Below are positions 1,873 to 14,802 of a stretch of 32,000 nucleotides of DNA, in pieces (positions within the stretch are counted from its first letter, which is position 1; each line of letters begins with the position of its first letter). A program made the translations under genes and the position numbers. A model generated the notes under the pieces. That model searched no databases and had not been told where the DNA came from. It worked only from the letters and a program-made list of their open reading frames with translations. This DNA comes from Wallemia ichthyophaga EXF-994 (taxonomy: Eukaryota > Fungi > Basidiomycota), in contig NW_008806278.1 of assembly GCF_000400465.1 (NCBI RefSeq), positions 30,001 through 62,000 of the forward strand, read 5' to 3'.

Positions 1873-2276
1873 TTACTTGGTCTTGGCCTTGGATAGGTGA
1901 TAATTTATGCTATTCGCCTTTTTAGGTGCAGAGCGGCCCTATAAGCAGCAGCATCAGTATGTTCAACGGCTCATTAGAATATACACACCTTGGTCGACAT
2001 GCAATTCGCAAGCGATGTACTGTACTGTGCACATTGCCCAACTCCAAGGAAATCACCGCTACTAGCAAAGCAATTGAGCAGCCCACTCAGCTCTGTCCCG
2101 CATGGTGGTGGATTTATATCTATTCGGTTAGGATATCCACTGGAACTCACTCCACCCGCACTCACTCTTCCTCGCTCTAACCTTGAGCTTATCCACTTTC
2201 ACTGGAGGTTGATTATTACTAGGCTGCTTCTCTCCTTAATTATTCACCCACTCGCTGTGGTCCTCGTCGGATGCAT
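1873..2276 (-). CDS. MRP10: Mitochondrial small-subunit ribosomal protein mS37/Mrp10 (twin-CX9C CHCH type), 4 exons; missed by the ORF track
   Basis: Exons 2276-2252, 2201-2166, 2119-1989, 1938-1873; introns of 50, 46 and 50 bp. Spliced protein MHPTRTTAMKVDKLKVRARKNINPPPCGTELSGLLNCFASSGDFLGVGQCAQYSTSLANCMSTKGRSAPKKANSINYHLSKAKTK shows CX9C...CX9C, an N-terminal KLKV motif and a C-terminal INYH, as in yeast Mrp10. Confidence 0.85.
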
Positions 2277-2386
2277 CTTCCAAGTCGTTTGATTGCACAC
2301 TCTGAGAAACGATGACACAAAATTTAAACCAAATTATACATTTCGTCCTTTACATCTTCTGTTGTTACACATTTCCTCCTCTATCC

Positions 2387-3595
2387 TCACGCCCAATATG
2401 CTAGTACTGCCATCAATAGCGACCCAAGCAGCAACATCGAAATACCGATAAATGTTTTAAACCTCCCTGCGTATTGCATTTCAGGACTTCTGAACCAATC
2501 ATTCGCCACCAATTCCACTAGCGATCCGTACAACAGTATCCCTGCTGACAACGCTGTAATCGTTCCAATAGCTATCAGTGCTGACTTTGACCTAGGAGAG
2601 TATGTCTCTTTAATGCCAATCCCTATTATTATTCCCAGTGACGTGTCAATACTGAAGGCAAAACTCATAATGAAAATCTTCAGCTTGTGCCATCTCTCGA
2701 AACTCAATTGGGATATACGCGACCCTAATCCCATACCCTCAAACATCTGATGAAATACCAAGGCGATCAGGTAAGGTTTAAAGCTCTCCCCCGTTGAAAC
2801 TGACAGCGCCACTCCTATAATTATTGAATGAAACAGAATGCCGCCCTCTAACAGCAAGACTTCCCATTTGAGTTGTTTCATTGCAGCTTCTGAGTTTGTG
2901 CGGGTAGACTCGGCGTCATACTGGATCTTTTTAACTGAGTCACTGACAGATATCATGTCACAGTTGCAGTTGGCGTCATTTTGTGATTCTTTTCTAAGTG
3001 CTTCATCGTGCGCTTGTTTTCGAGAATTAAAGCGACCACCCAGGTAATCAAACAGAAATACTATGTAAACGCCAGCTAAAACTATTGCTGCCGGTGTTTG
3101 TTTATACGCCAGTCCATCCAAACAATCATCGTCGAATTTGTGAATCGCGCTGAAAATTAAATGCACAATTGCTGTACACAGTATAACACCAGTACCAAAG
3201 TGCTGCACTATGAATAGCGCCCATTTAAAAGCTTTTTGTTCTTTGAATGCGTGAAGAGCAATTGGAAGATTAATACCAAGCGCACTTGCGACGAGCAAGA
3301 TAAAAACAGCGGCAATATGTAGTGGCATGTTGTATTCTTCCGTACTGACGCTATTGCACTGATCAGAATTTTTTGAGGATTCAAGTATGTTGGGTATATG
3401 ATTACATTGAAATGAAGAGATTGTGTCATCAAACACGCAACTCAAGCCTGTTGAGCAACTATAAATACTCCCCGATACGAAACATTCACCTTGCCCGATC
3501 GGTCCACTTCCTAATTCTCCGCGAATTGCTACCGCTGCTGATGCCGATATAATGGCTGCCGTGGATAGCAATGTAAGGAAAAACTGCATGCCCAT
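2387..3595 (-). CDS. ZIP-family (Zrt/Irt) zinc transporter, intronless paralog with a short Cys-only ectodomain
   Basis: 402-aa single ORF: signal peptide, one 4-Cys module, then the ZIP core (LHIAAVFILLVASALG, HFGTGVILCTAIVHL, LEGGILFHSIIIG, FHQMFEGMGLG, SAGILLYGSLVELVANDW, LMAVLAYWA). Confidence 0.93.
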   Translation of the reverse strand: MGMQFFLTLLSTAAIISASAAVAIRGELGSGPIGQGECFVSGSIYSCSTGLSCVFDDTISSFQCNHIPNILESSKNSDQCNSVSTEEYNMPLHIAAVFILLVASALGINLPIALHAFKEQKAFKWALFIVQHFGTGVILCTAIVHLIFSAIHKFDDDCLDGLAYKQTPAAIVLAGVYIVFLFDYLGGRFNSRKQAHDEALRKESQNDANCNCDMISVSDSVKKIQYDAESTRTNSEAAMKQLKWEVLLLEGGILFHSIIIGVALSVSTGESFKPYLIALVFHQMFEGMGLGSRISQLSFERWHKLKIFIMSFAFSIDTSLGIIIGIGIKETYSPRSKSALIAIGTITALSAGILLYGSLVELVANDWFRSPEMQYAGRFKTFIGISMLLLGSLLMAVLAYWA

Positions 3596-3866
3596 TTTTC
3601 TATTTATGCAAGTGAGCTATTGAGAATCATCCGAAATGCTTGAAAAATAGGTTACTGATGACCGAAACGGTGCAATGACAGGGCGATCGTCTCAGGAACG
3701 ACTATCTTTGCAACCTTGCAAGTCATTTTTAGTTTAATTTCACTAAAGTGATATTGAATTTGAGATGCATAATTCGTCTGTATCTCAATATGCGGCAAAC
3801 TACTGCCCGTCAATCCAGGCAAAGTAGTAAATCAAGGAACCTCTAAATTGAAAATATAGTTACAAA

Positions 3867-5397
3867 TCAAGCCCATTTACCGCTGTCGACGTTATTAGTA
3901 TGGAACGACGCATCTTGAGACACTCACAGCACCGCCATCAAGAGTGACCCAAGTAGCAACATTGTAATACCCAGACATGTCTTAAAGACACCACTGCTTC
4001 TCATCTCAGGACTCTTGAACCAGTCATTTGCAATTAGCTCCACAAGTGCTGCATAGATCAGCACACCAGCAGATAGTCCATTGAGAATGCCAAGTGCGAG
4101 GAGAGCTGATTTAGAGTTTGGAGAGTAGCTTTCATGCACTCCAATGCCAATAGCTATACCAATTGGAGTGATCAAACTGAAGCATACCGCCATTATAAAC
4201 ACCTTCATTTTGTGCCAGGTTTTGAAAATCAAAAAACACACCCGCGAACCTAGAGCTAAACCCTCAAACAACTTCATCTTGTTAAAAATGTTTCTCAAGC
4301 TAAGTAAACAACCCACTTGGTGAAACACAATTGCAATCAGAAATGGTACGAACTGGTCTCCTCCTGTTGCCCCAAGAGAAACGCCAATCATCACACTGTG
4401 GAACACAATTCCTATTTCAAGCAGCGAGACTTCCCATTTAAGCTGACTCATTGCAATTTCTGGCGATATTTGAGCTGAGTCAACACTAGTAATGTCAGTT
4501 TTGGCAATGCATCAGGCTGAACCTACTCAGATATGTCATCTTTGCCATCATTTGACCTGTTTTCAGTCCTAGTCGCTTCCGCTAGTTGTCTTGTTTTTCT
4601 TGCAAAGAATCTCATTCCAATATAGTCGAATAAGAAGACGACATACACAGCGGCCAGCGCGATAGCTGCTGCTGCAGGCCCATACGCCAACTCGCCTATA
4701 CAGTCGTTGTTAAACATCACAAACGCGTGGAATAGAAGATGAATGACTGTTTTGTGATTAGTGTATGCTATTTCAGTAATGGCCACTTACGAGCAGTGCA
4801 GAGTATAACCCCGGTACCGAAATGTTTCACCACGAACAAACCCCAGCTGAAAAATGAACGCATTTTGAAGCCAGAAAAAGCTATTGGAAGGCCCACTCCC
4901 AATGCACTGCTGACTAGCAGGATAAATATTGCACCGATGTGCAGCGGTTGATCGTACTCTCCTATATCGATTGATCCACACTGATCTGAGCAGTCACCGT
5001 GCGTATGTCCACCATGTACTACACAAGTGCCTCCTTCAGAGCTATTCGTCTCGCAAAGCCACACGCCGTTGTCAAATTCGCAGAAAGAGCCGTCGTCGCA
5101 GTGCCAATGCATCTCATGCTGATGACACGAACGTCCAGGGGGGCCTTGCATCTCTTTGCCTCCTGTGTCGCTGTCGCTCCCGTCTGTTATCCCACCAGTG
5201 GGCGAGCCTGAGTCACCTTCGCAGCGAAATGCAGAAATACTCGTGTCGAAAGTGCACTCAGCCCCACTCGAGCAGGTAAAAGTGCCGTTTGAGAGTGAGC
5301 AGTTACCTTGCCCTCTCGGACCAGAAGTCTCATTCCCATTTACTATCGCTGCTGAAGCAGCTCCCGCTGCAGCCAATAGGGAGAATATATAGCGCAT
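3867..5397 (-). CDS. ZRT1: ZIP-family zinc transporter of Zrt1(Candida)/ZrfC type with a His/Cys-rich ectodomain, 5 exons
   Basis: Start 5397 (MRYIFSLL); an in-frame ATG also lies at 5412. Introns 4747-4790, 4486-4526, 4272-4316, 3883-3927. Splicing restores CTALIHL, FHQLFEG and AVLGKWA*. The ectodomain contains CHQHEMHWHCDDGSFCE, matching the CHXHX5CX6[E/D] motif described for A. fumigatus ZrfC, plus CVVHGGHTHGDC. Confidence 0.9.
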
Positions 5398-5642
5398 ATT
5401 CTGAAAATGCAATTGGAAGGTATAGAAGTGAGTTTCTGCTCTTTTTTTGCTCTCTGTATGAGATAACTGCGAAGGTCATTTCTTGGTATGGCTCGTCAGG
5501 CACCATGTGAGGGCGGCTTCCATAGGAAAATCGAGCACGAGACCAAGCTCACTGTGGCAGTACGCAGCTTGGCAGGCTTTGATTTGTATAAAGCAGAAAA
5601 AAATCTAGTTGATCTTCCACATTGAACGGAGAGAAAAAAGCG
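5398..5642. promoter_or_regulatory. Shared divergent promoter of the ZIP transporter and the Pra1-like zincophore
   Basis: 245 bp between head-to-head start codons. TATAAAG at 5587-5593 lies about 50 bp before the Pra1 ATG. Confidence 0.6.
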
Positions 5643-6543
5643 ATGAAAACTTTTACCACACTGGCTACACTGGTAATTTCGTCGGCTTTCACACGCGCAG
5701 CACCATTCGACCACGCTGAATGGGTCAATCCTGACTACATTGCTCGAATGTCTATTCATGAATCCTGCAACGCAACTCAGACCATTCAGCTCGAGAAAGC
5801 ACTCGATGATTTTGAAAGATTTTCACACAATGCTCAATCATACCTCCAGAGAGCAGGAACAGAAGATGAGTTGATTGACAAATACTTCGGCTCCTCCTCA
5901 AATCCAGAGAATCAACCCGTTGCAGCTGGGATATTTGCCAGTCTTTCCGATGGAGATAAAGCTGGTGCTTCGCTTCGATGCGACGATCCCGATGGACTTT
6001 GCGCCCTGTACGACGGCTACTATGCAGGTCTGTTATAAAAAAAGGGCTGTTCTAGACTAAAAAAAACCAACAGGACATCACAGAGGTACCAATGGCACTC
6101 TTGAAACTGTCATTTGCGATCTAAGCTACGAGACCCGCAAACCAATAGAGCAAGTTTGTGCTTTAGGTCACCTCGTTCCAGATGATCAAGCCGGTAAATT
6201 CTGGGGCATTGACCTTATACATCGCTTTTCACACTTGCCGATAGTTGCTGGTGGATCTGTTGGCCATGCAGCAGATGAATATGAGACACTGATCGATTTA
6301 GCAAAGAATAATGCAAGTGAAGCTGCTTGGAATATGAAGACGCTGCAGTATTTCGCTTTAGATGCGTGGGCTCACACCTTCGCTGTCCCGGGTGTTGGGT
6401 GCGACGAGTACGCAGATTCAGCTGATCAGTCTAAGTCTACACCAACACCGACACCAGAACCCGAGCCATCGCCTACCGATGACGCTCCGTTGCTCTGTCA
6501 TACCCACGCTAATGGAGAAGAACACTGCACCACCGCCGAGTAG
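5643..6543 (+). CDS. PRA1: Secreted Pra1/Aspf2/Zps1-family zinc-binding protein (zincophore, HRXXH family), 2 exons
   Basis: Intron 6028-6073 joins YYAG|HHRG. Protein: signal peptide MKTFTTLATLVISSAFTRA, IHESCNATQ, LRCDDPDGLC, ETVICDLSY, DLIHRFSHLP (HRxxH), LQYFALDAWA, a PT/PE-rich linker and C-terminal CHTHANGEEHC (compare Candida Pra1 CHTHADGEVHC). Confidence 0.92.
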
Positions 6544-6668: not shown

Positions 6669-6684
6669 GTGTGTGTGTGTGTGT
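6669..6684. repeat. (GT)8 microsatellite between convergent Pra1 and flippase 3' ends
   Basis: gtgtgtgtgtgtgtgt read directly from the sequence. Confidence 0.8.
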
Positions 6685-6737
6685 AGAAAAGTTAAACAAT
6701 TGTCCATGTTGATTTCACGTTTCAGTATGCAAGGTGA

Positions 6738-9700
6738 TTAAGAATTTTTGGTTTTACGCATTGTTGGCATCGCAGTTTTGAATGAGTCGACCGTTCGGGA
6801 TGTCCAGTTTTTGCTCTTGCGCTTCAACTTACGTTTCCGAGCTTGGGCGTCGTGCGTCGAAGGTCTGCGGTGGAATTGAGAGGACGTCTCGCTGAGGTGG
6901 GATTGCAATCTTTGCAATGCATATCCATTCTCTTCTTGATCAAAGTTGAATGTCGCATTCCGTCCGCTTGATCTCTCTCCCGTCCTCATGTCTATCCTCT
7001 GCCCCGATCTGGCTGAAGAGGGTCTGTTTGGTGGGTACTCCGAATCTTCGTAGTACGCATTCTGCAAATGAGACTGCATCAATGGGTCGTTCTCAAAGTC
7101 ATGATTATCGTCCTTCTTTTGTACGTATTGCATAATCTATGGGAGTTGTGAGATTTCGCCAACAATGGAATAGCTACCTACGTGAATATCATCTGGGTGA
7201 AATTGAAACTTGTACGCTTTGAAAAGATATCTCGGTATCAACGAGAAAATGACTGTGAATATCACGCAGAACCAGAACAAGGGGGAGTGGAAGACGAAAT
7301 AATCGTTACCCCATACGTTCGTCCATACCAGCTGAGGTGACAAAGCGCTATAGACTCCCTATAAGACGTTAGATTGAGTGTAGAGTCTCAAGCCCACTCA
7401 CAGTAAAAGCCCAAACCAAAACAATACCAAAAAACATGCCGAATGCAATCCACCAATTCCACGACCGAGCGTTCAAACTGATTAAAAGATTTGTTCCTGT
7501 GACGATCGAAACAATCATGGTTGTCGACATTTCGTAAATGTACACGTCAAACCCATCGCTGCGAGCAGTTGGTGATTGATAAGCGTAATATGTGAAGAAA
7601 AACACTATTGTTGATTGGACGATGGCCTCAAATACGTAAAGGAAGAAAAGCCGATGATTGAAATACTGTGCTGTTCTACCATACTTGTACAACTCAGGAA
7701 TAGCCATGAGAACTCTGTCGCTCAGCACAGAATCAAATAGTCCGAGACCGATAGGAGGGCATATTGTCCACAGCACGTTCCACAATAAAAGATAGATGTA
7801 CGCGTAAACGTACGACGTCGAAAAGGCACAATAGAACTGATACCAGAAGAGAACCGCGGCGCCGTTAATATTCTTAATCCAGAAGCTAAGGATGGCGTTG
7901 CTGTTTCGGTAGTAATACCAATGACCATGAACGAGAAGAAGTTTTTTCAGGTAGCGGAATTGAGCGATAGCATAATCGGACGAGTTGACTGCTTGAAGAC
8001 CCTCCTCGCCCGCTATACCTATACCTACGTGCGCCGCCTGGATCATTGAGACATCGTTAGCGCCGTCGCCGATCGCAAGTGTCATAGTATCGAGGTTATC
8101 TTTGATGAGACGAACTACGAGGGCTTTCTGTAGCGGTGAAACTCTGCAGCATACGACTGACTGGCATTTGAGCGCTAGATTGAGCAACAAATCTTTGCTC
8201 CATGGTTCAGAGAGGGCGTGCGTCAGTGCCGTGCCATCGATGACCAGTGCATATCCACCGTCTCGCTGGCCGTTGTCTGCGCCAACTAGCGACTCCATGT
8301 CTGACATTGCATGTGATTGAGTCGATGATCGCTTCGATCCGCCATCATAGTGATTATCTGGCGGCTGGTTCCTCAAACGTGATGGGATATTCTCGCCGGG
8401 GAAGAACTGCTCCATTGCTCTGCGCATCTGAGAATAAGCAGAGTTCCGGTCGCCGTACTCTCCACCTCTAACTATTATTAGATTGTTGTCATCTGTCAGC
8501 AACTGTGTGGAATAGCCAATAGCTATCGCTGTTTCCAGCTTGTCACCAGTTGCTACCCAGACCTTAATACCTGCTCTCTTTAAATCACGGATAGTTTCTG
8601 GAACACCATCTTGCAGCTTGTCTTCGATCGCTGTCGCACCGAGCAAAGTCAAGTTTGTCTCAAACTTGCTGGCTACAGCTTCGATGAGGTTCTCACGGTC
8701 CTCCAATGACACTGTTGCGTCGTTGTATTCCTTACTGAACTCTTCATAGACTTCTGTAGGAACAACGCGGTAGCCGAGACAGAGTGTACGAAGACCTTCA
8801 CTGGCGAACAGACTGAGGTCCTTGTCAGTGGCATCTAAGAGTAGTATTAGAACGTGTCAATAGAAAGCACTACAACTACCTTTCATACCCTGATTGTGAA
8901 CGTTCGCCTCACACCTCTCGAAAATTATGTTATCGGCACCTTTAGTGAGAAGAATGATTTCACTTTCCTCCTCATCGTCGTCATCTAGGGCGATCTTCGG
9001 GTTGCGTTCACCCCTGGCAACATTGTTGGCCATGTCTATCTTCATTTGAGCTCTTTTAGGAGACAGCTTTCTGATTACCACACTCATTCTCTTCCTCGCT
9101 GATGAGAATTCAAGGACGTTGAGAAGCTCATAGTGATCCATGCCGTCTCCCGTGAATGGAGTCTGCAGCTTGAGGATGTTTCTGTCTCTACCCTTGAATA
9201 CGTAGCCGATATCAGCAGCACCCTGAACCAAAGCAGACTCATCAGGAGATTGTGCTTTGTATTCAAGTGTACCGTCTTCCTTTTCAGCAGCTAATGCTGT
9301 ATGGCAGAGAGATAAACAAGTGAGGAATGCGTCTGTATCTTGGCTTTTCTTTTCAGCTTCTTCATTCACACCACCTCTGATATCCTCTTGAAGCACAGAA
9401 GAGAAAAACTTGGGTACTTCTTCAGTTTCTTGGGGATTCTCCCCCCTAGTGGTGGTGTGTTTATTTACGTGTGGCTCGTGACCATCTGAGGAGTTGAATT
9501 CTGATCCCGCCTTAGTCTGATTCAATGGCGTGACGCTGTCGACTATCGATGCTGGAATGTCTGGGGAGTGTCCTATAGACAATTTGCTTTCAACGACTGT
9601 ATTTTCATCTGCCTTGTAAACTTTTCCGGCGATCGAGCACTGTCTAAAGATCATGGCATTTTGAGTTAAAGTACCAGTTTTGTCAGAAAAAATGTACTGA

Positions 9701-11499
9701 ATTTGACCAAGCTCATCAGACAGATTCCACGATCTTGCTACAGTCCTATAACCGTTCTTTTTATATCTCATTTCTTTATCGAGATATATCCAGCCTGCCT
9801 GACACGTCCGCACAAACTCCATCGAAATGTAAAGCGAGATTGGCACAATGTTCTGGAAAGTAATGAGACCGTTAAAGAAGGTGAAAACACCATTGGTAGA
9901 TGGGTTATCATCTGGTCTGTCATCGTTGTACGTCCAGTACGCTCCATTCCGCTGATCGTCTACTTCGATGGTGTAGGCGACGATGGCGCAAATTGCGCTA
10001 ATAATCGCAAGCAACGCCAGGTTAAATCCTACCTGCGGATCCATGAGACGTTCAGTCTTGGCACGCTTTGACGGAGTAATACCAGAGTTTGCTATGATTT
10101 TGGTGTCTGAGCCGGTAAAGAGAACAACACCGATGACCCATTTGGTGTTGCGTAGAACAGTACCTCTAAGCAGCATAGTTGACATATCGACGGGGCATTT
10201 GACTGGTTGTTGGTCCTCCTTGACGACGGCTGCATTAAGCCTGAACATGTTCACATCCGCTGGCTCACTGTCGATTCTGTATCCGTGGCACTCTCTAGCA
10301 ATCGCAGCTGGGCTGGTGAGGTGAGATAGTTGAGGAATAGCGTGTCTAGATTTGAGGTTGGTTTCACCATCCAAGTTCTTGGTCTCAACGAAACAGACAT
10401 CTTCTTCTTCCGAGGTCGAGCATACGACAATGTCTAGAACTCTTATTAGTAAAGTGGAAATAGATTCTTGCACCCTGCGCTCACCTGCTGGAAATGGCTC
10501 GTTGTTGTGAATCTTGACAAAATCACCAACTTTAACATCTTCCCATAGCATAGTCCTCCAACTATTTCCCGCATCATCTTGACCATCGTCTTCTTCACCC
10601 TCCTCCACCTCCTCTGCGTCATTTTCAGGGATGGGGCCTGCGGGCAACTGCGCCGGAGGCGGTGGCGGAGTGTACGTGCGAGGGTTTTCAAGGTCATCAA
10701 CGAGACCGACCTGCCTACCATTGAATTCGCCGGTGTCATTTAACTCGGGAGGGTTGCCTACGCTGTGCCTTCCCATCTGATCGCTCTCGAACTTAAGTTC
10801 GTCGTCGAGAGAGGTAACAGCATCAGGGAGGTTTGGGGGAGGAACATGGTCTCTGTTCTTAGATTTCTTCTTAAGCCTAAGTTTACCAAGCATAGCGCCC
10901 TTTGGAAGACCACCTGTAAACGTCTTTGATTTTGCTTCTATGTGATTGAAGTTGTGATAGTGGTAATCGCTATGGCGGCTCTCGCCGTACTTGCCTTTGA
11001 GAACCTTAACCTTTGAGTGGTTCACCTTTCTATCTGATTGGTGCCTCTTGATATCTTCATAGCCATCCTTACACGCAGTAATGAAGACGATGATGATAAG
11101 CGGGAGGATAACGACACCGGCGTTTATTGTAGAGAACTTGGGAAAGAACTGGAGAATCGCGATTCCGAGGAAGAACAGGTTGGCCACACGCCTAAATTGC
11201 TCCAAGATGTTTCGAGGCACGAAAGTGAGAATTGTGTATTTCGAGGATATTATTTGATTCGTCGTGTAGACCCAACCAGGGCCGACGTGATGCGTTGATC
11301 GCGGATGTAGCAGCTTCTCTGTCCACGTCTTTTTCCCCAGCGTGGACTCGTGCGGCAGCGGGCTGTTGAGATACACGGACCGTGGCAATGGCTTGCGCTT
11401 CTTTGACGCAAACATTTTCTCAATACTGAATTCATCCCATTTCTGAAAAATGCCGGGCTTCGTCGGCGTCGACGTCGGCAGCCTCTCAGACGGCTTCAT
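6738..11499 (-). CDS. DNF1: P4-ATPase phospholipid flippase, Dnf1/Dnf2/Apt1 clade, 5 exons
   Basis: Introns 10434-10484 (in-frame; removal restores FPAD), 8835-8879, 7359-7401, 7137-7181. Motifs NLDGETNLK (P4 DGET), FQNIVPISLYISME, FSDKTGTLT, FSSARKRMSV, TKGAD, LGATAIEDKLQ, TGDKLETA, GDGANDVSMIQ. Confidence 0.93.
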
Positions 11500-11621
11500 C
11501 GTTGTGAGTAAACAAGGTGATTGTCGTTATTAGACGGGTATCAATGCTTAATTACAGATCTTGTTAATTTAAAGCCTCTATGTTAAATACATGTTTCCTT
11601 TTCATCCTTATCGCCTATCGC

Positions 11622-14610
11622 CTATTTATCCAGGTGGACCATTGCGGGATCGACATCGCTGTCCTCAAACGTCATTTTGTTATCTTGTTTGCTGCTGCTG
11701 TTCCTGTCATTATTCATTTCATGTGCATCTGTTTTCTCTTGTCAGTTTTTATCAAAATCCTCCTGCGCTTGCTAAAGCCTCACGGATATTCTTCGGCCGT
11801 AGCCCTAATATTGAATCAATATCTACATCCTCATACAGCGCTGAGTTTCTGTTCTTTCTTCTATGTCTCGATGGTCGAGCCGGTGTCGTTGGTGTCGTTA
11901 TTGGCGGCGAAAATGTTCGATTGAGTGGTGCACTAATCGGTGCATTCAGTGGTGGTATTTTCAGCGGTGCTGGTGGCCTCTTTCTTTCAGTGTTGACCTT
12001 AGGTGCTGGCATGACCACATCCACCGTCTCATCTTCCATGATTTCTGTCGGTGTAGTTTCGAATGATGGTTTAGCAGTTGAAACGAATGATTCTGCAAGT
12101 GATTCTGCTATCGAATCCACGTTATCGACATGGTCATTGTCGTCGTCATTATCATTATCATTATCCTCTTCTTCGGTAGACTGATCCTCCAAAGGCACTG
12201 GTTTGCCGCCATCTCCAACGTTGAAGACGTACTTAAACTCAGTCAATAACAAACCAAACAGTGGAGCTGGTATACCCAAAGTCGGACTGAATACGATACT
12301 AACGTTTCTCAGTGACATTCTGTTGATCTCCTCACTCGACACAACATCAGTAAGATGCGAAACCAATGCCCTAAGGAGTGCGTAATTGGCAATCGGGAGA
12401 AGCGACACCAATCTGCCTAGCTCTCTCACCCTCTTTTTTGGGTCTGGTATGTCTGCCACTTGTAAAAATTGAAAGTGTAGTTCTCTCGTCAGAAGACTAA
12501 CTGGCAACTCTCTAAAGTACAACTTGAGTAAACCCGTGATAGCATGTGGATCGAAAACGTCGTCACTTTCAATCAAGTCTATATCTCCTTCACTATTGTA
12601 GCGCTCTTTGAGCCCCTTCACCTGGGTACTCGAACCTGACAGCCTATATATGCCCTCCTCCTCTTCAGCTTTAACGTGTTGAAGGTATCGAATGCACCTA
12701 AACACCACAGCAGGCAAGCCAGCGATCTGGGCTTGTTGGAGTGAATCATCAACTGGTACACCGAAAACAGGCAGCTTTGGTGCTGATTTGTCTGATATGC
12801 GAGTTAGCTAAAGTCTTATCAAACCTTGAAACTCACCTTTGGAACTCCCACTACTACTCCCACTAAAGGCACCCCAGAACCCACGACTTTTCCCTTTATG
12901 ATCACGCTCATGCTGCTTCTCAGACTTGTCTATGCTTTCGCACGATTCATTGAGCTTAGCGCCGACAGCCTTATACTGCCCACTCAAGGAATGTATGCTA
13001 CCTTGGCGTTGTGGGAGTAAATTTGCACTTTCGCCATGTTGAGATATGCCAAGAGCGTCGACTTTCCCAGTATTTCGGGCGTCAGCGAGTACCTTCGGTA
13101 TGGAGAATTTGGAGGAGACTTCAGGCGGCAGCGAGGTGAGACTGACTGAGTTCGACGGCTGGATTTCCTCTTTCGATATGGGTTTGCTGTCGGAAGTGCG
13201 TGGACGCTCCACATCTTTCAATTTGTGTGTTTCTAATGAACGCGTTTTCAACGACGTCGCCCGACGTTTCAACCCGTTGTTGGCAGAATTCGGAGTGCTA
13301 TCTTCTGCTATATTTGTTCTCTCATGCAAAACGGGCGAAGAGGCACCACCAACATTGCTATGTGTCCTTTGATGCCATAGTAGAGTGTTGATCCAGTTAT
13401 CCCTCTCCAAGTCATTCTCAGCACATAGTATATGTCTATCTTTTTCATTCTGCGTGGCCTGGTGTCTTTCTAGAATAAGAAAAGCATGCTTGAATGCGCT
13501 GTCTCGTTCATTTGCTGAGCTGGAATCAGACGATGCCCGAGATGGATGCTGCCTGCCGATAGATGCGTCGTGTATTCTTATACTACCAATTTGGCTACCG
13601 CCTCGTTGCTCGTAGTAATCGAGTATACCCTCCCTCCCTATGGTAAAATACCTCGTCTTCCAGCCACCCAAGTTCTTGCCCTTCTTGGTGAGGTAGCCAT
13701 CTTTGGTGCCGTTGATTTGGGATGCTTGGTTTGGTCTGACAAAGTCTGAAGAGAGGAAGGCAGCTAGTTCCATATGTGGAGTAGCGCTATTCTTGGGAAT
13801 GATAGTGTAGGTATGTGGAATTGATATTATCGAGTGAAAATAGTTTTCTAACTGTGTTTTCTGCTGCAAAACTTTACTAGGGGATCTGTCCTTGAAAATG
13901 CTTTTATCAGGCAAGGACACCAGTCTACCCTTAGTATGCTTGAAGTAAGGTTTTTTGATAATCTCCCTAACTTTGATATCAAGTGCGTGTATCGAATCGT
14001 ATGATTTGTCGACTTTCCACTCAGCATTCGATGGCTCATACTTGACGGTAATAGTAAAGCTATACACGCTCTTGTTGTCTTTGTTAGGTTTCACTGATGA
14101 AGACAGCACGGCAAGTTGGAGAGCAGGAACGAGAGTTGGAGTGAGCTTGAAGACAGGTACTGGGGGAGCAGCAGTCTTGACAGAAGGCGTGATGGCGGGC
14201 TGTTTTGGAGAAAGATGCTGGTAGTGACTGCGTGCTTGAGGGAGCGTGTTAAATGAGTGGCTGGCGTGTTGCATGTATGGGCTAGACTTGGACTTGTGCT
14301 GCTGCGAAAGCTGAGCTTTCTCCATAGCAGAGAGCATTGCAGGCTTGATGGGAAGATTGATCGCGTCGTCGTGCGAGTGTGATTTTTTCGACAGTGCAAG
14401 GTGGTGTGTGGGTTGAGAGTGCTGCTGCTGCTCGTGTGGCAGCGTATCCAACTCAACATTGAGCTTATTTATCGTCGACTTCTGCCTGTCTATCAGATTC
14501 CACAGCTGGTTGTTCTGCGACGCGAGAGTGTTGCGCTCGTTCAACAGAAATAGCAGCGGATCTTCCCCCTTCAAGTCGAGGATATCCTGGAGCGTCAACG
14601 GGCTGGCCAT
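11622..14610 (-). CDS. BEM3: Bem3-like Rho/Cdc42 GTPase-activating protein (coiled coil, PX, PH, RhoGAP)
   Basis: Likely start MASPLTLQ at 14610. Intron 12792-12836 joins the PX/PH part (KDGYLTKKGKNLGGWKTRYF) to VFGVP...GIYRLSGS...N-M RhoGAP (NRMSLRNVSIVFSPTL). A probable last intron 11738-11783 (GTGAGG..CTGAC.AAG) gives the tail QKTDAHE...VHLDK* ending at 11622; without it the ORF ends at 11752. Confidence 0.85.
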
Positions 14611-14802
14611 ATCATTGGAAGAGAGGAAGAGAGATGGATTGAAATCATAAATTGCAAATATTAAAGTACAAATAGCTATAGATGCACCAGATATTCCTAC
14701 TCGGAAGGCTTCACCCACACTCCCCGCACTTGCTTAAGGTGATTTCCGCCAGATTAGCTTTCACGGAGAGATATGAAGCGGGGTTGCTAGATGGCGGGAG
14801 AT

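Follow-up and report, generated by a model that had tools for sequence, protein, structure and literature searches.

The Pra1-Zrt1 pair is the best-known protein 'zincophore' system of fungi, and research on it has been confined to ascomycete pathogens, as PRA1-ZRT1 in Candida albicans and as aspf2-zrfC in Aspergillus fumigatus. In 2012, the synteny of the two genes was reported to be older than the split between Ascomycota and Basidiomycota, with examples from Ustilago and Sporisorium (PMC3386192). A survey in 2017 found 61 of 87 Pra1-positive species to be syntenic, many basidiomycetes included (PMC5751234, Table S1), and in 2024 PRA1-ZRT1 was analysed in Cryptococcus and Kwoniella, in which a Zrt1-family paralogue, ZIP2, is unlinked to the pair (PMC11185503). 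Wallemia is not among the species in the 2017 table. Here, we describe a three-gene locus in a stretch of 32,000 nucleotides from Wallemia ichthyophaga EXF-994 (contig NW_008806278.1, positions 30,001 to 62,000), hereafter the window, in which position 1 is the first letter. We consider it likely that this is the W. ichthyophaga orthologue of the PRA1-ZRT1/aspf2-zrfC zincophore locus, to which a tandem copy of the transporter gene has been added, and that its functional steps would follow those of the characterised systems. The features that carry this reading are as follows.

5643-6543, plus strand: PRA1/aspf2-type zincophore gene, 284 residues; exon 1 at 5643-6027, a GT..AG intron of 46 nt at 6028-6073, and exon 2 at 6074-6543
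6220-6267, plus strand: codons of the zinc-binding His triad; HRFSH (residues 178-182) at 6220-6234 and His193 at 6265-6267
6496-6528, plus strand: codons of CHTHANGEEHC (residues 270-280), followed by TTAE and the stop codon
5398-5642, no strand: putative bidirectional promoter of ZIP-B and PRA1, 245 bp
5397-3867, minus strand: ZIP-B, a Zrt1/ZrfC-type 'receptor' ZIP of 451 residues in five exons (5397-4791, 4746-4527, 4485-4317, 4271-3928, and 3882-3867) with introns of 44, 41, 45, and 45 nt
5127-4990, minus strand: His-triad modules in the ZIP-B ectodomain, CHQHEMHWHC (5127-5098) and CVVHGGHTHGDC (5025-4990)
3596-3866, no strand: spacer from the ZIP-B stop codon to the ZIP-C start codon, 271 bp
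3595-2387, minus strand: ZIP-C, an intronless tandem paralogue of ZIP-B, one uninterrupted open reading frame of 402 residues

A sequence-only reading had proposed 'Pra1 + receptor-type ZIP + second ZIP' in a basidiomycete-type genome. As far as homology and architecture go, the data support this interpretation, and the coordinates and anatomy of all three genes stand as first given. The Pra1-like gene (ATG at 5643) and ZIP-B (ATG at 5397) are divergently transcribed across exactly 245 bp, and the homologous ZIP-C, which is 52% identical to ZIP-B (E=2e-119), follows directly downstream. Both the 3′ end of ZIP-B and the own promoter of ZIP-C must lie within the 271-bp spacer. The window is eukaryotic DNA, whose genes have short GT..AG introns. 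A W. ichthyophaga protein matches the Pra1-like one at 99% identity, and Wallemia belongs to the Wallemiomycetes within Basidiomycota.

The C. albicans PRA1-ZRT1 (Zrt101) unit shares with this locus a secreted-type PF13933 protein having an HRXXH+H triad, a CHTHxxGxxHC tail, six core cysteines, and three sequons, as well as the divergent pairing with a Zrt1-clade ZIP bearing a long His/Cys-rich ectodomain. The differences are a Pra1 identity of only ~35-40%, the lack of the ascomycete HAXXH motif and the presence of four residues past the tail motif in Wallemia, the third gene added in Wallemia for a tandem ZIP without His modules, and the organism itself, a non-pathogenic obligate halophile. 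The aspf2-zrfC unit of A. fumigatus has in common with it a bidirectional promoter and a transporter whose long N-terminus carries repeated zinc-binding motifs, and the conserved promoter blocks of Wallemia resemble ZafA-type and PacC-type sites. However, ZIP-B has two His-triad modules and one His-free module, whereas ZrfC has four zinc-binding motifs in the long N-terminus that accounts for its uptake of zinc at alkaline pH (PMC9785309). The acid-pH partners ZrfA and ZrfB of A. fumigatus belong to a different ZIP clade, whereas ZIP-C appears as a recent offshoot of the ZrfC-type clade. The clusters of Ustilago maydis, Sporisorium, and non-pathogenic Cryptococcus and Kwoniella share the phylum, the divergent pair, and the C-terminal motif of Pra1 without HAXXH (PMC3386192, PMC11185503, PMC12663325), but ZIP2 of Cryptococcus and Kwoniella lies elsewhere in the genome (PMC11185503), whereas W. 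ichthyophaga and W. hederae keep the paralogue in tandem. The closest locus, that of W. mellicola, has the same flanking genes, orientation, and promoter blocks, with 70% overall identity in Pra1 and ~72% core identity in ZIP-B, but only one ZIP.

The Pra1-like protein matches the HRXXH family profile PF13933 with E=4.4e-68 and 230 bits (cut-off 27) over profile positions 35-242 of 245, and its residues 15-280 align with the C. albicans Pra1 structures 9n47 and 9n4d (E=2e-42). In this alignment, H178, H182, and H193, the last one within GHAAD, fall on His178, His182, and His193 of 9n47. In HRFSH, Arg takes the place of the protease catalytic Glu, and a His serves as third ligand, which is precisely the state of Pra1. 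The roles of the HRXXH+H triad residues and the C-terminal motif have been established in the C. albicans protein (PMC12663325), and CHTHXXGXXHC is the highest-affinity zinc site in Pra1 and Aspf2 peptides (PMC9175090, PMC9780748). This zinc-binding tail is a feature of Dikarya and is retained by basidiomycete Pra1 proteins (PMC12663325), for which the absence of HAXXH is typical (PMC3386192, PMC12663325). The W. mellicola protein, annotated as 'major allergen Asp f 2-like protein', has the same C-terminal motif. The description of the product as an HRxxH protein ending in CHTHANGEEHC thus holds for both motifs but not for the terminus, because TTAE trails the second one. Six core cysteines (C42, C113, C120, C143, C157, and C238) align with cysteines of 9n47 and would form disulfides, as the six of C. 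albicans Pra1 form three (PMC12663325). The protein is predicted to be secreted on the basis of its hydrophobic N-terminus, MKTFTTLATLVISSAFTRA, and its sequons N43, N135, and N208, which match the glycosylated N48, N135, and N208 of C. albicans Pra1; out of four such sequons there, three are kept in place. The numbering of the triad (178, 182, and 193) and of the sequons N135 and N208 coincides between the two proteins despite the low identity and unequal N-terminal lengths.

The best matches to the Wallemia Pra1 outside the genus are Penicillium proteins (43-44%), with other basidiomycetes at 35-40%, and horizontal transfer from Eurotiomycetes was considered. Across 270 aligned columns, the identities of Penicillium and basidiomycete proteins to Wallemia Pra1 are nearly equal (~40-43%). 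There is no sign of such a transfer, because a neighbour-joining tree of 20 homologues leaves the Wallemia protein outside Ascomycota, and this origin was rejected.

ZIP-B matches the ZIP profile PF02535 (E=1.3e-48), as does ZIP-C (E=4.9e-50), so that both transporters, like the Pra1-like protein, belong to the families that the sequence-only reading had named for profile searches. The N-terminus of ZIP-B spans 151 residues with 11 Cys and 7 His in two C..HxxHxH..C modules, and its ectodomain comprises ~130 residues with the two HxxHxH hairpin modules. The CHxHx5Cx6E motif, which had been read in this ectodomain, is literally present as CHQHEMHWHCDDGSFCE. It can be regarded as a genuine family motif rather than a chance string, because the ZIP-B orthologues of W. 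mellicola and W. hederae also carry it, it is found in Paramarasmius, a Blastomyces ZrfC-type ZIP has four copies, and the Zrt2-type ZIPs compared have none. Among all ZIPs compared, this motif and HxxHxH are limited to ZIP-B-type proteins, and the columns of the His modules are at least 90% conserved in an alignment of 25 proteins of the Zrt1/ZrfC clade. The metal-site motifs of the core are FHSVMIG in transmembrane helix 4 (TM4; HS) and FHQLFEG in TM5 (HQxxE). An AlphaFold2 model of ZIP-B, with a mean predicted local distance difference test score (pLDDT) of 77 and ~90 in the transmembrane core, places two four-stranded β modules (residues 33-60 and 91-116) and an extra hairpin (126-133) before an eight-helix core, whose best matches in the PDB are BbZIP structures. 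The ectodomain has no match in the Pfam library scanned, which did not include PF28209; this family, 'His-triad_hairpin', is annotated on related ZIPs in precomputed form.

ZIP-C lacks ~75 ectodomain residues that in ZIP-B carry both His-triad modules. It retains a signal-like N-terminus, the juxtamembrane Cys, and the whole transport core, with intact motifs in TM4 (FHSIIIG) and TM5 (FHQMFEG). The first Cys module of the ectodomain, which is free of His, is also kept and is 48% identical to that of ZIP-B. With an N-terminus of 91 residues, one His, and no zinc-binding motif, ZIP-C does not have the long His/Cys-rich ectodomain of a receptor-type ZIP. The W. hederae counterpart, ZIP2, is even shorter in this part: its N-terminus of 42 residues consists of a signal-like start and then ~25 Ser-rich residues before TM1, without any His/Cys motif. 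The two copies also differ in introns. ZIP-B has four (41-45 nt) and ZIP-C none, and W. hederae ZIP2 (L005 12821-14030) has only the terminal one, at the position found in ZIP-B, which suggests that the duplicated copy lost its introns stepwise.

The public models of these genes vary. The deposited ZIP-B model (P0067, 447 residues) terminates at an in-frame TGA (3927-3925), while an intron GTGAGT...CAG (3927-3883) and a mini-exon of 16 nt give the C-terminus ...LGKWA. The deposited model probably omits this last exon, because the W. mellicola protein and the clade consensus end in the same way. The deposited W. mellicola ZIP (P0068) has 11 extra residues around ...VFHQ DTTLSILRHYQ LFEG..., exactly at the site of ZIP-B intron 3 in HQLFEG, and appears to keep part of an intron. 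For ZIP-C, one model (P0066, 388 residues) removes as an intron 14 codons, ECFVSGSIYSCSTG, that contain conserved cysteines, and in another strain (L004 5062-6267) a product of 170 residues is annotated, although the frame of 402 residues is intact and 99.5% identical.

A neighbour-joining tree of ZIPs, based on 309 well-aligned columns and 500 bootstraps, groups the five Wallemia proteins (ZIP-B, ZIP-C, the W. mellicola ZIP, and the two W. hederae ZIPs) at 100%. They fall inside the Zrt1/ZrfC clade, of the PRA1-linked type, with proteins of Cryptococcus, Testicularia, Blastomyces, and Peziza, and the Zrt2-type ZIPs of Ustilago, Vanrija, Kwoniella, and Tilletia form a clade apart. An assignment of ZIP-C to the Zrt2/ZrfA/ZrfB type was rejected, since it joins the ZIP-B-type Wallemia proteins at 100%; its likeness to Zrt2-type ZIPs is confined to the missing His-rich ectodomain. 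Within the Wallemia group, ZIP-C and W. hederae ZIP2 pair at 87% and the ZIP-B-type orthologues at 56%. The cores of ZIP-C and W. hederae ZIP2 are ~57% identical to every other Wallemia ZIP, compared to ~70% among the ZIP-B-type orthologues. Independent duplications in W. ichthyophaga and W. hederae were rejected because the groupings that they require, the two W. hederae ZIPs together and ZIP-B with ZIP-C, receive 3.8% and 0% of the bootstraps, respectively. The most economical history would be one tandem duplication before the split of these two species, followed by ectodomain reduction and intron loss in the copy.

W. ichthyophaga has the gene order L16, a twin-Cx9C gene, ZIP-C, ZIP-B, the divergent Pra1-like gene, and a flippase gene. 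W. mellicola has L16, the small twin-Cx9C gene, a single ZIP divergent from Pra1, and the flippase gene, with no trace of a second ZIP at the locus by tblastn. W. hederae possesses the same three-gene unit, in the order L16, Pra1 divergent from ZIP1, ZIP2, the twin-Cx9C gene, and the flippase gene. The block of four genes from Pra1 to twin-Cx9C (L005 8909-14666), which lies between the L16/ETF-QO genes and the flippase gene, is thus inverted relative to W. ichthyophaga (window ~1970-6543) and W. mellicola. A search with ZIP-C returned no other Wallemia ZIP at E<=1e-20, a result that is a hint only, given the word pre-filter of the search. Wider sampling covered six further species and seven loci, among which no tandem ZIP was found at a zincophore locus. 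Collybia, Violaceomyces, and Penicillium have a single ZIP divergently paired with Pra1, Marasmius and Paramarasmius have one ZIP each, and no ZIP lies within 8 kb of Pra1 in Auricularia and Vanrija. A Marasmius protein (P0070) that resembled another ectodomain-less ZIP of the Zrt1 clade was rejected as an annotation truncation, because tblastn detects ectodomain-coding sequence upstream of its annotated start.

Variation among five W. ichthyophaga strains (the one of the window, L004, and L006-L008), which are 99.2-99.6% identical over the locus, was used to examine selection on the individual parts, with the following counts.

ZIP-B: 9 variable sites, 0 non-synonymous
ZIP-C: 10 variable sites, 8 synonymous and 2 non-synonymous (V22I and E229D)
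PRA1: 5 variable sites, 3 non-synonymous
245-bp divergent promoter: 0 variable sites
ZIP-B/ZIP-C spacer: 8 variable sites, 29.5 per kb
Introns: 5 variable sites, 22.6 per kb

The frame of ZIP-C is unbroken in all five strains, and two non-synonymous changes out of ten correspond to an estimated P of ~4e-4 when about three quarters of random coding changes are taken as non-synonymous. Together, the intact frame and the few replacements indicate purifying selection on ZIP-C. A pseudogene was therefore rejected on the basis of this polymorphism and of the conservation in W. hederae. The introns and the other spacer combined have 26 variable sites per kb, a rate at which ~6.5 sites would be expected in the divergent promoter, and the Poisson probability of finding none is ~0.0015 (an estimate). 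The absence of variable sites against this expectation shows that the shared promoter is constrained.

Two short blocks of this promoter read the same in all three Wallemia species, W. ichthyophaga, W. mellicola, and W. hederae.

5469-5476: GCGAAGGT
5568-5573: CTTGGC, the reverse complement of GCCAAG

A further stretch, ACyAAGC..ACyGTG..AGT, is common to the divergent promoters of the three species. The Zap1 half-site is NAAGGT, a part of the full zinc-responsive element (ZRE) ACCTTNAAGGT, and the PacC/Rim101 consensus is GCCARG. The full ZRE is absent from all promoters examined. In A. fumigatus, the ZafA core 5′-CARGGT-3′ drives aspf2-zrfC (PMC6070888). The GAAGGT of the first block is similar to the Zap1 half-site and, apart from its first base, to the ZafA core, and the second block, read on the other strand, corresponds to the PacC/Rim101 consensus. 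The two blocks would fit control by zinc and pH as in C. albicans and A. fumigatus, a resemblance that proves nothing by itself. The spacer upstream of ZIP-C contains one CAAGGT (3718-3713, minus strand) and no GCCARG. Because ~0.26 such hexamers are expected there by chance, this site is a weak lead only, and nothing conserved resembling it was found upstream of W. hederae ZIP2.

From these data and by analogy with the characterised systems, the following mechanism can be proposed. Low zinc at neutral to alkaline pH would co-induce PRA1 and ZIP-B (compare PMC3386192, PMC12663325, PMC9785309), and the secreted Pra1 would capture Zn2+ by its His triad and Cys/His tail and hand it to the His-rich ectodomain of ZIP-B for import. 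ZIP-C would go back to a duplication in the common ancestor of W. ichthyophaga and W. hederae and would have been held by purifying selection. It may import free zinc directly, without a His-triad hand-off, and is probably regulated separately from the PRA1/ZIP-B pair, because its upstream spacer is separate and unconstrained. The presence of both a zincophore-dependent and a zincophore-independent route, as suggested by the sequence-only reading, would fit the exact loss of the His modules in ZIP-C and its W. hederae counterpart. A more specific proposal, which we regard as tentative and somewhat doubtful, is that the receptor ZIP was duplicated in place and one copy shed exactly its His-triad modules to become a zincophore-independent, separately regulated importer. 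Such an importer would perhaps act at acid pH or high chloride and might replace a Zrt2-type ZIP in these very small genomes.

Several points weigh against this scheme. The conserved promoter block reads GAAGGT, whose first base departs from the A. fumigatus core CARGGT, a consensus that may not be that of Wallemia. The position of the W. mellicola ZIP in the neighbour-joining tree has only 56% support, so the duplication could go further back, and W. mellicola could have lost the copy afterwards. In addition, ZIP-C might still offer residual docking to Pra1 because its first Cys module remains, although such docking would be less likely on W. hederae ZIP2.

Among rival explanations, a change of job in ZIP-C is unlikely, though less so than the others. 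ZIP-C could carry another metal (Fe, Mn, or Cd), work at an internal membrane, or modulate ZIP-B as a heteromer; ZIPs are commonly dimeric and many carry several metals. The faster evolution of ZIP-C and W. hederae ZIP2, with ~57% core identity against ~70% among ZIP-B-type orthologues, would suit this explanation, as would the divergent cytoplasmic TM3-TM4 loop of ZIP-C, which holds a CNC string. However, the TM4/TM5 metal-site residues of ZIP-C are of the same type as those of ZIP-B and the clade consensus, the signal-like N-terminal segment and juxtamembrane Cys are retained, and nothing indicates a new specificity. We consider it improbable, to a somewhat greater degree, that ZIP-C is a duplicate, decaying or redundant, that plays no part of its own, in which case the locus would be functionally an ordinary two-gene unit. 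Such a duplicate might well have lost the ~75-residue ectodomain block and all introns and have an upstream spacer as polymorphic as introns, and W. mellicola gets by with one ZIP at the locus. Nevertheless, the open reading frame is intact in the five strains with eight synonymous changes against two conservative non-synonymous ones, and every invariant residue of the ZIP core is present. Moreover, W. hederae retains a counterpart that groups with ZIP-C at 87% in spite of an even shorter ectodomain, and therefore the copy has persisted since before the species split. Finally, a third view, in which the HRXXH product would be a secreted metalloprotease of the M35/deuterolysin kind, or else an adhesin/antigen, and its linkage to a ZIP incidental, can be practically dismissed. 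It draws on the resemblance of deuterolysin to the Pra1 fold (PMC12663325) and on a weak hit to PF14521 Aspzincin_M35 that, at 23 bits, stays below the cut-off of 30. However, the catalytic Glu of HEXXH is replaced by Arg with His as the third ligand, exactly as in Pra1, which itself showed no proteolytic activity (PMC3386192, supplementary Fig. S1). In addition, Pra1 is divergently paired with a ZIP of the Zrt1 type in W. mellicola, W. hederae, Collybia, Violaceomyces, and Penicillium as well, and the pairing is seen in 61 of 87 Pra1-positive species (PMC5751234). The reading of the locus as a zincophore unit with a retained tandem transporter is preferred.

A few observations concern the surroundings of the locus. 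The small open reading frame at 1974-2165 (minus strand) has two Cx9C motifs, CGTELSGLLNC and CAQYSTSLANC, and is probably an exon of a gene for a twin-Cx9C (CHCH) mitochondrial protein. This gene adjoins a ZIP in all three Wallemia species and has travelled with the W. hederae inversion. On the other side, the 3′ flank of the PRA1-like gene has a short (TG)n microsatellite (~6669-6685). Beyond it, W. ichthyophaga annotations present a P4-type flippase and a PH/RhoGAP protein fused as one product of 2497 residues (window ~7369-14718, minus strand; L004 9415-17287), while in W. mellicola they are two genes of 1519 and 1010 residues (L001 11027-19032), and the fusion is possibly an annotation merge. 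Scans of the window for tRNA genes and Rfam families gave no match.

No link of Wallemia to the zincophore system was found in the searchable literature, and the W. ichthyophaga genome paper makes no mention of zinc or ZIPs. The sequence-only reading had regarded the locus as an expanded version of the system in a lineage where that system was not known to be characterised. This stands for the Wallemia locus and its tandem ectodomain-less ZIP, which are undescribed in that literature, but not for the two-gene unit of Basidiomycota, which has already been published (PMC3386192, PMC5751234, PMC11185503). The gain in knowledge is incremental: earlier publications already cover the zincophore system itself, its synteny in Basidiomycota, and the importance of the ZrfC N-terminus. 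The novelty lies solely in the ectodomain-less tandem copy, retained by two species, which varies a known system in a modest and lineage-specific way. If the proposed history of ZIP-C is true, it would amount to a natural 'N-terminal deletion' experiment that turned a receptor-type transporter into a zincophore-independent importer. A non-pathogenic halophile with a compact genome would then provide a natural contrast, in which the canonical pair stands beside a sister transporter differing mainly by the loss of its ectodomain. The ZIP-B/ZIP-C pair could reveal what the ectodomain and the zincophore hand-off add to uptake, and the locus could show how a fungus obtains its zinc from brines that are rich in chloride and neutral to alkaline.

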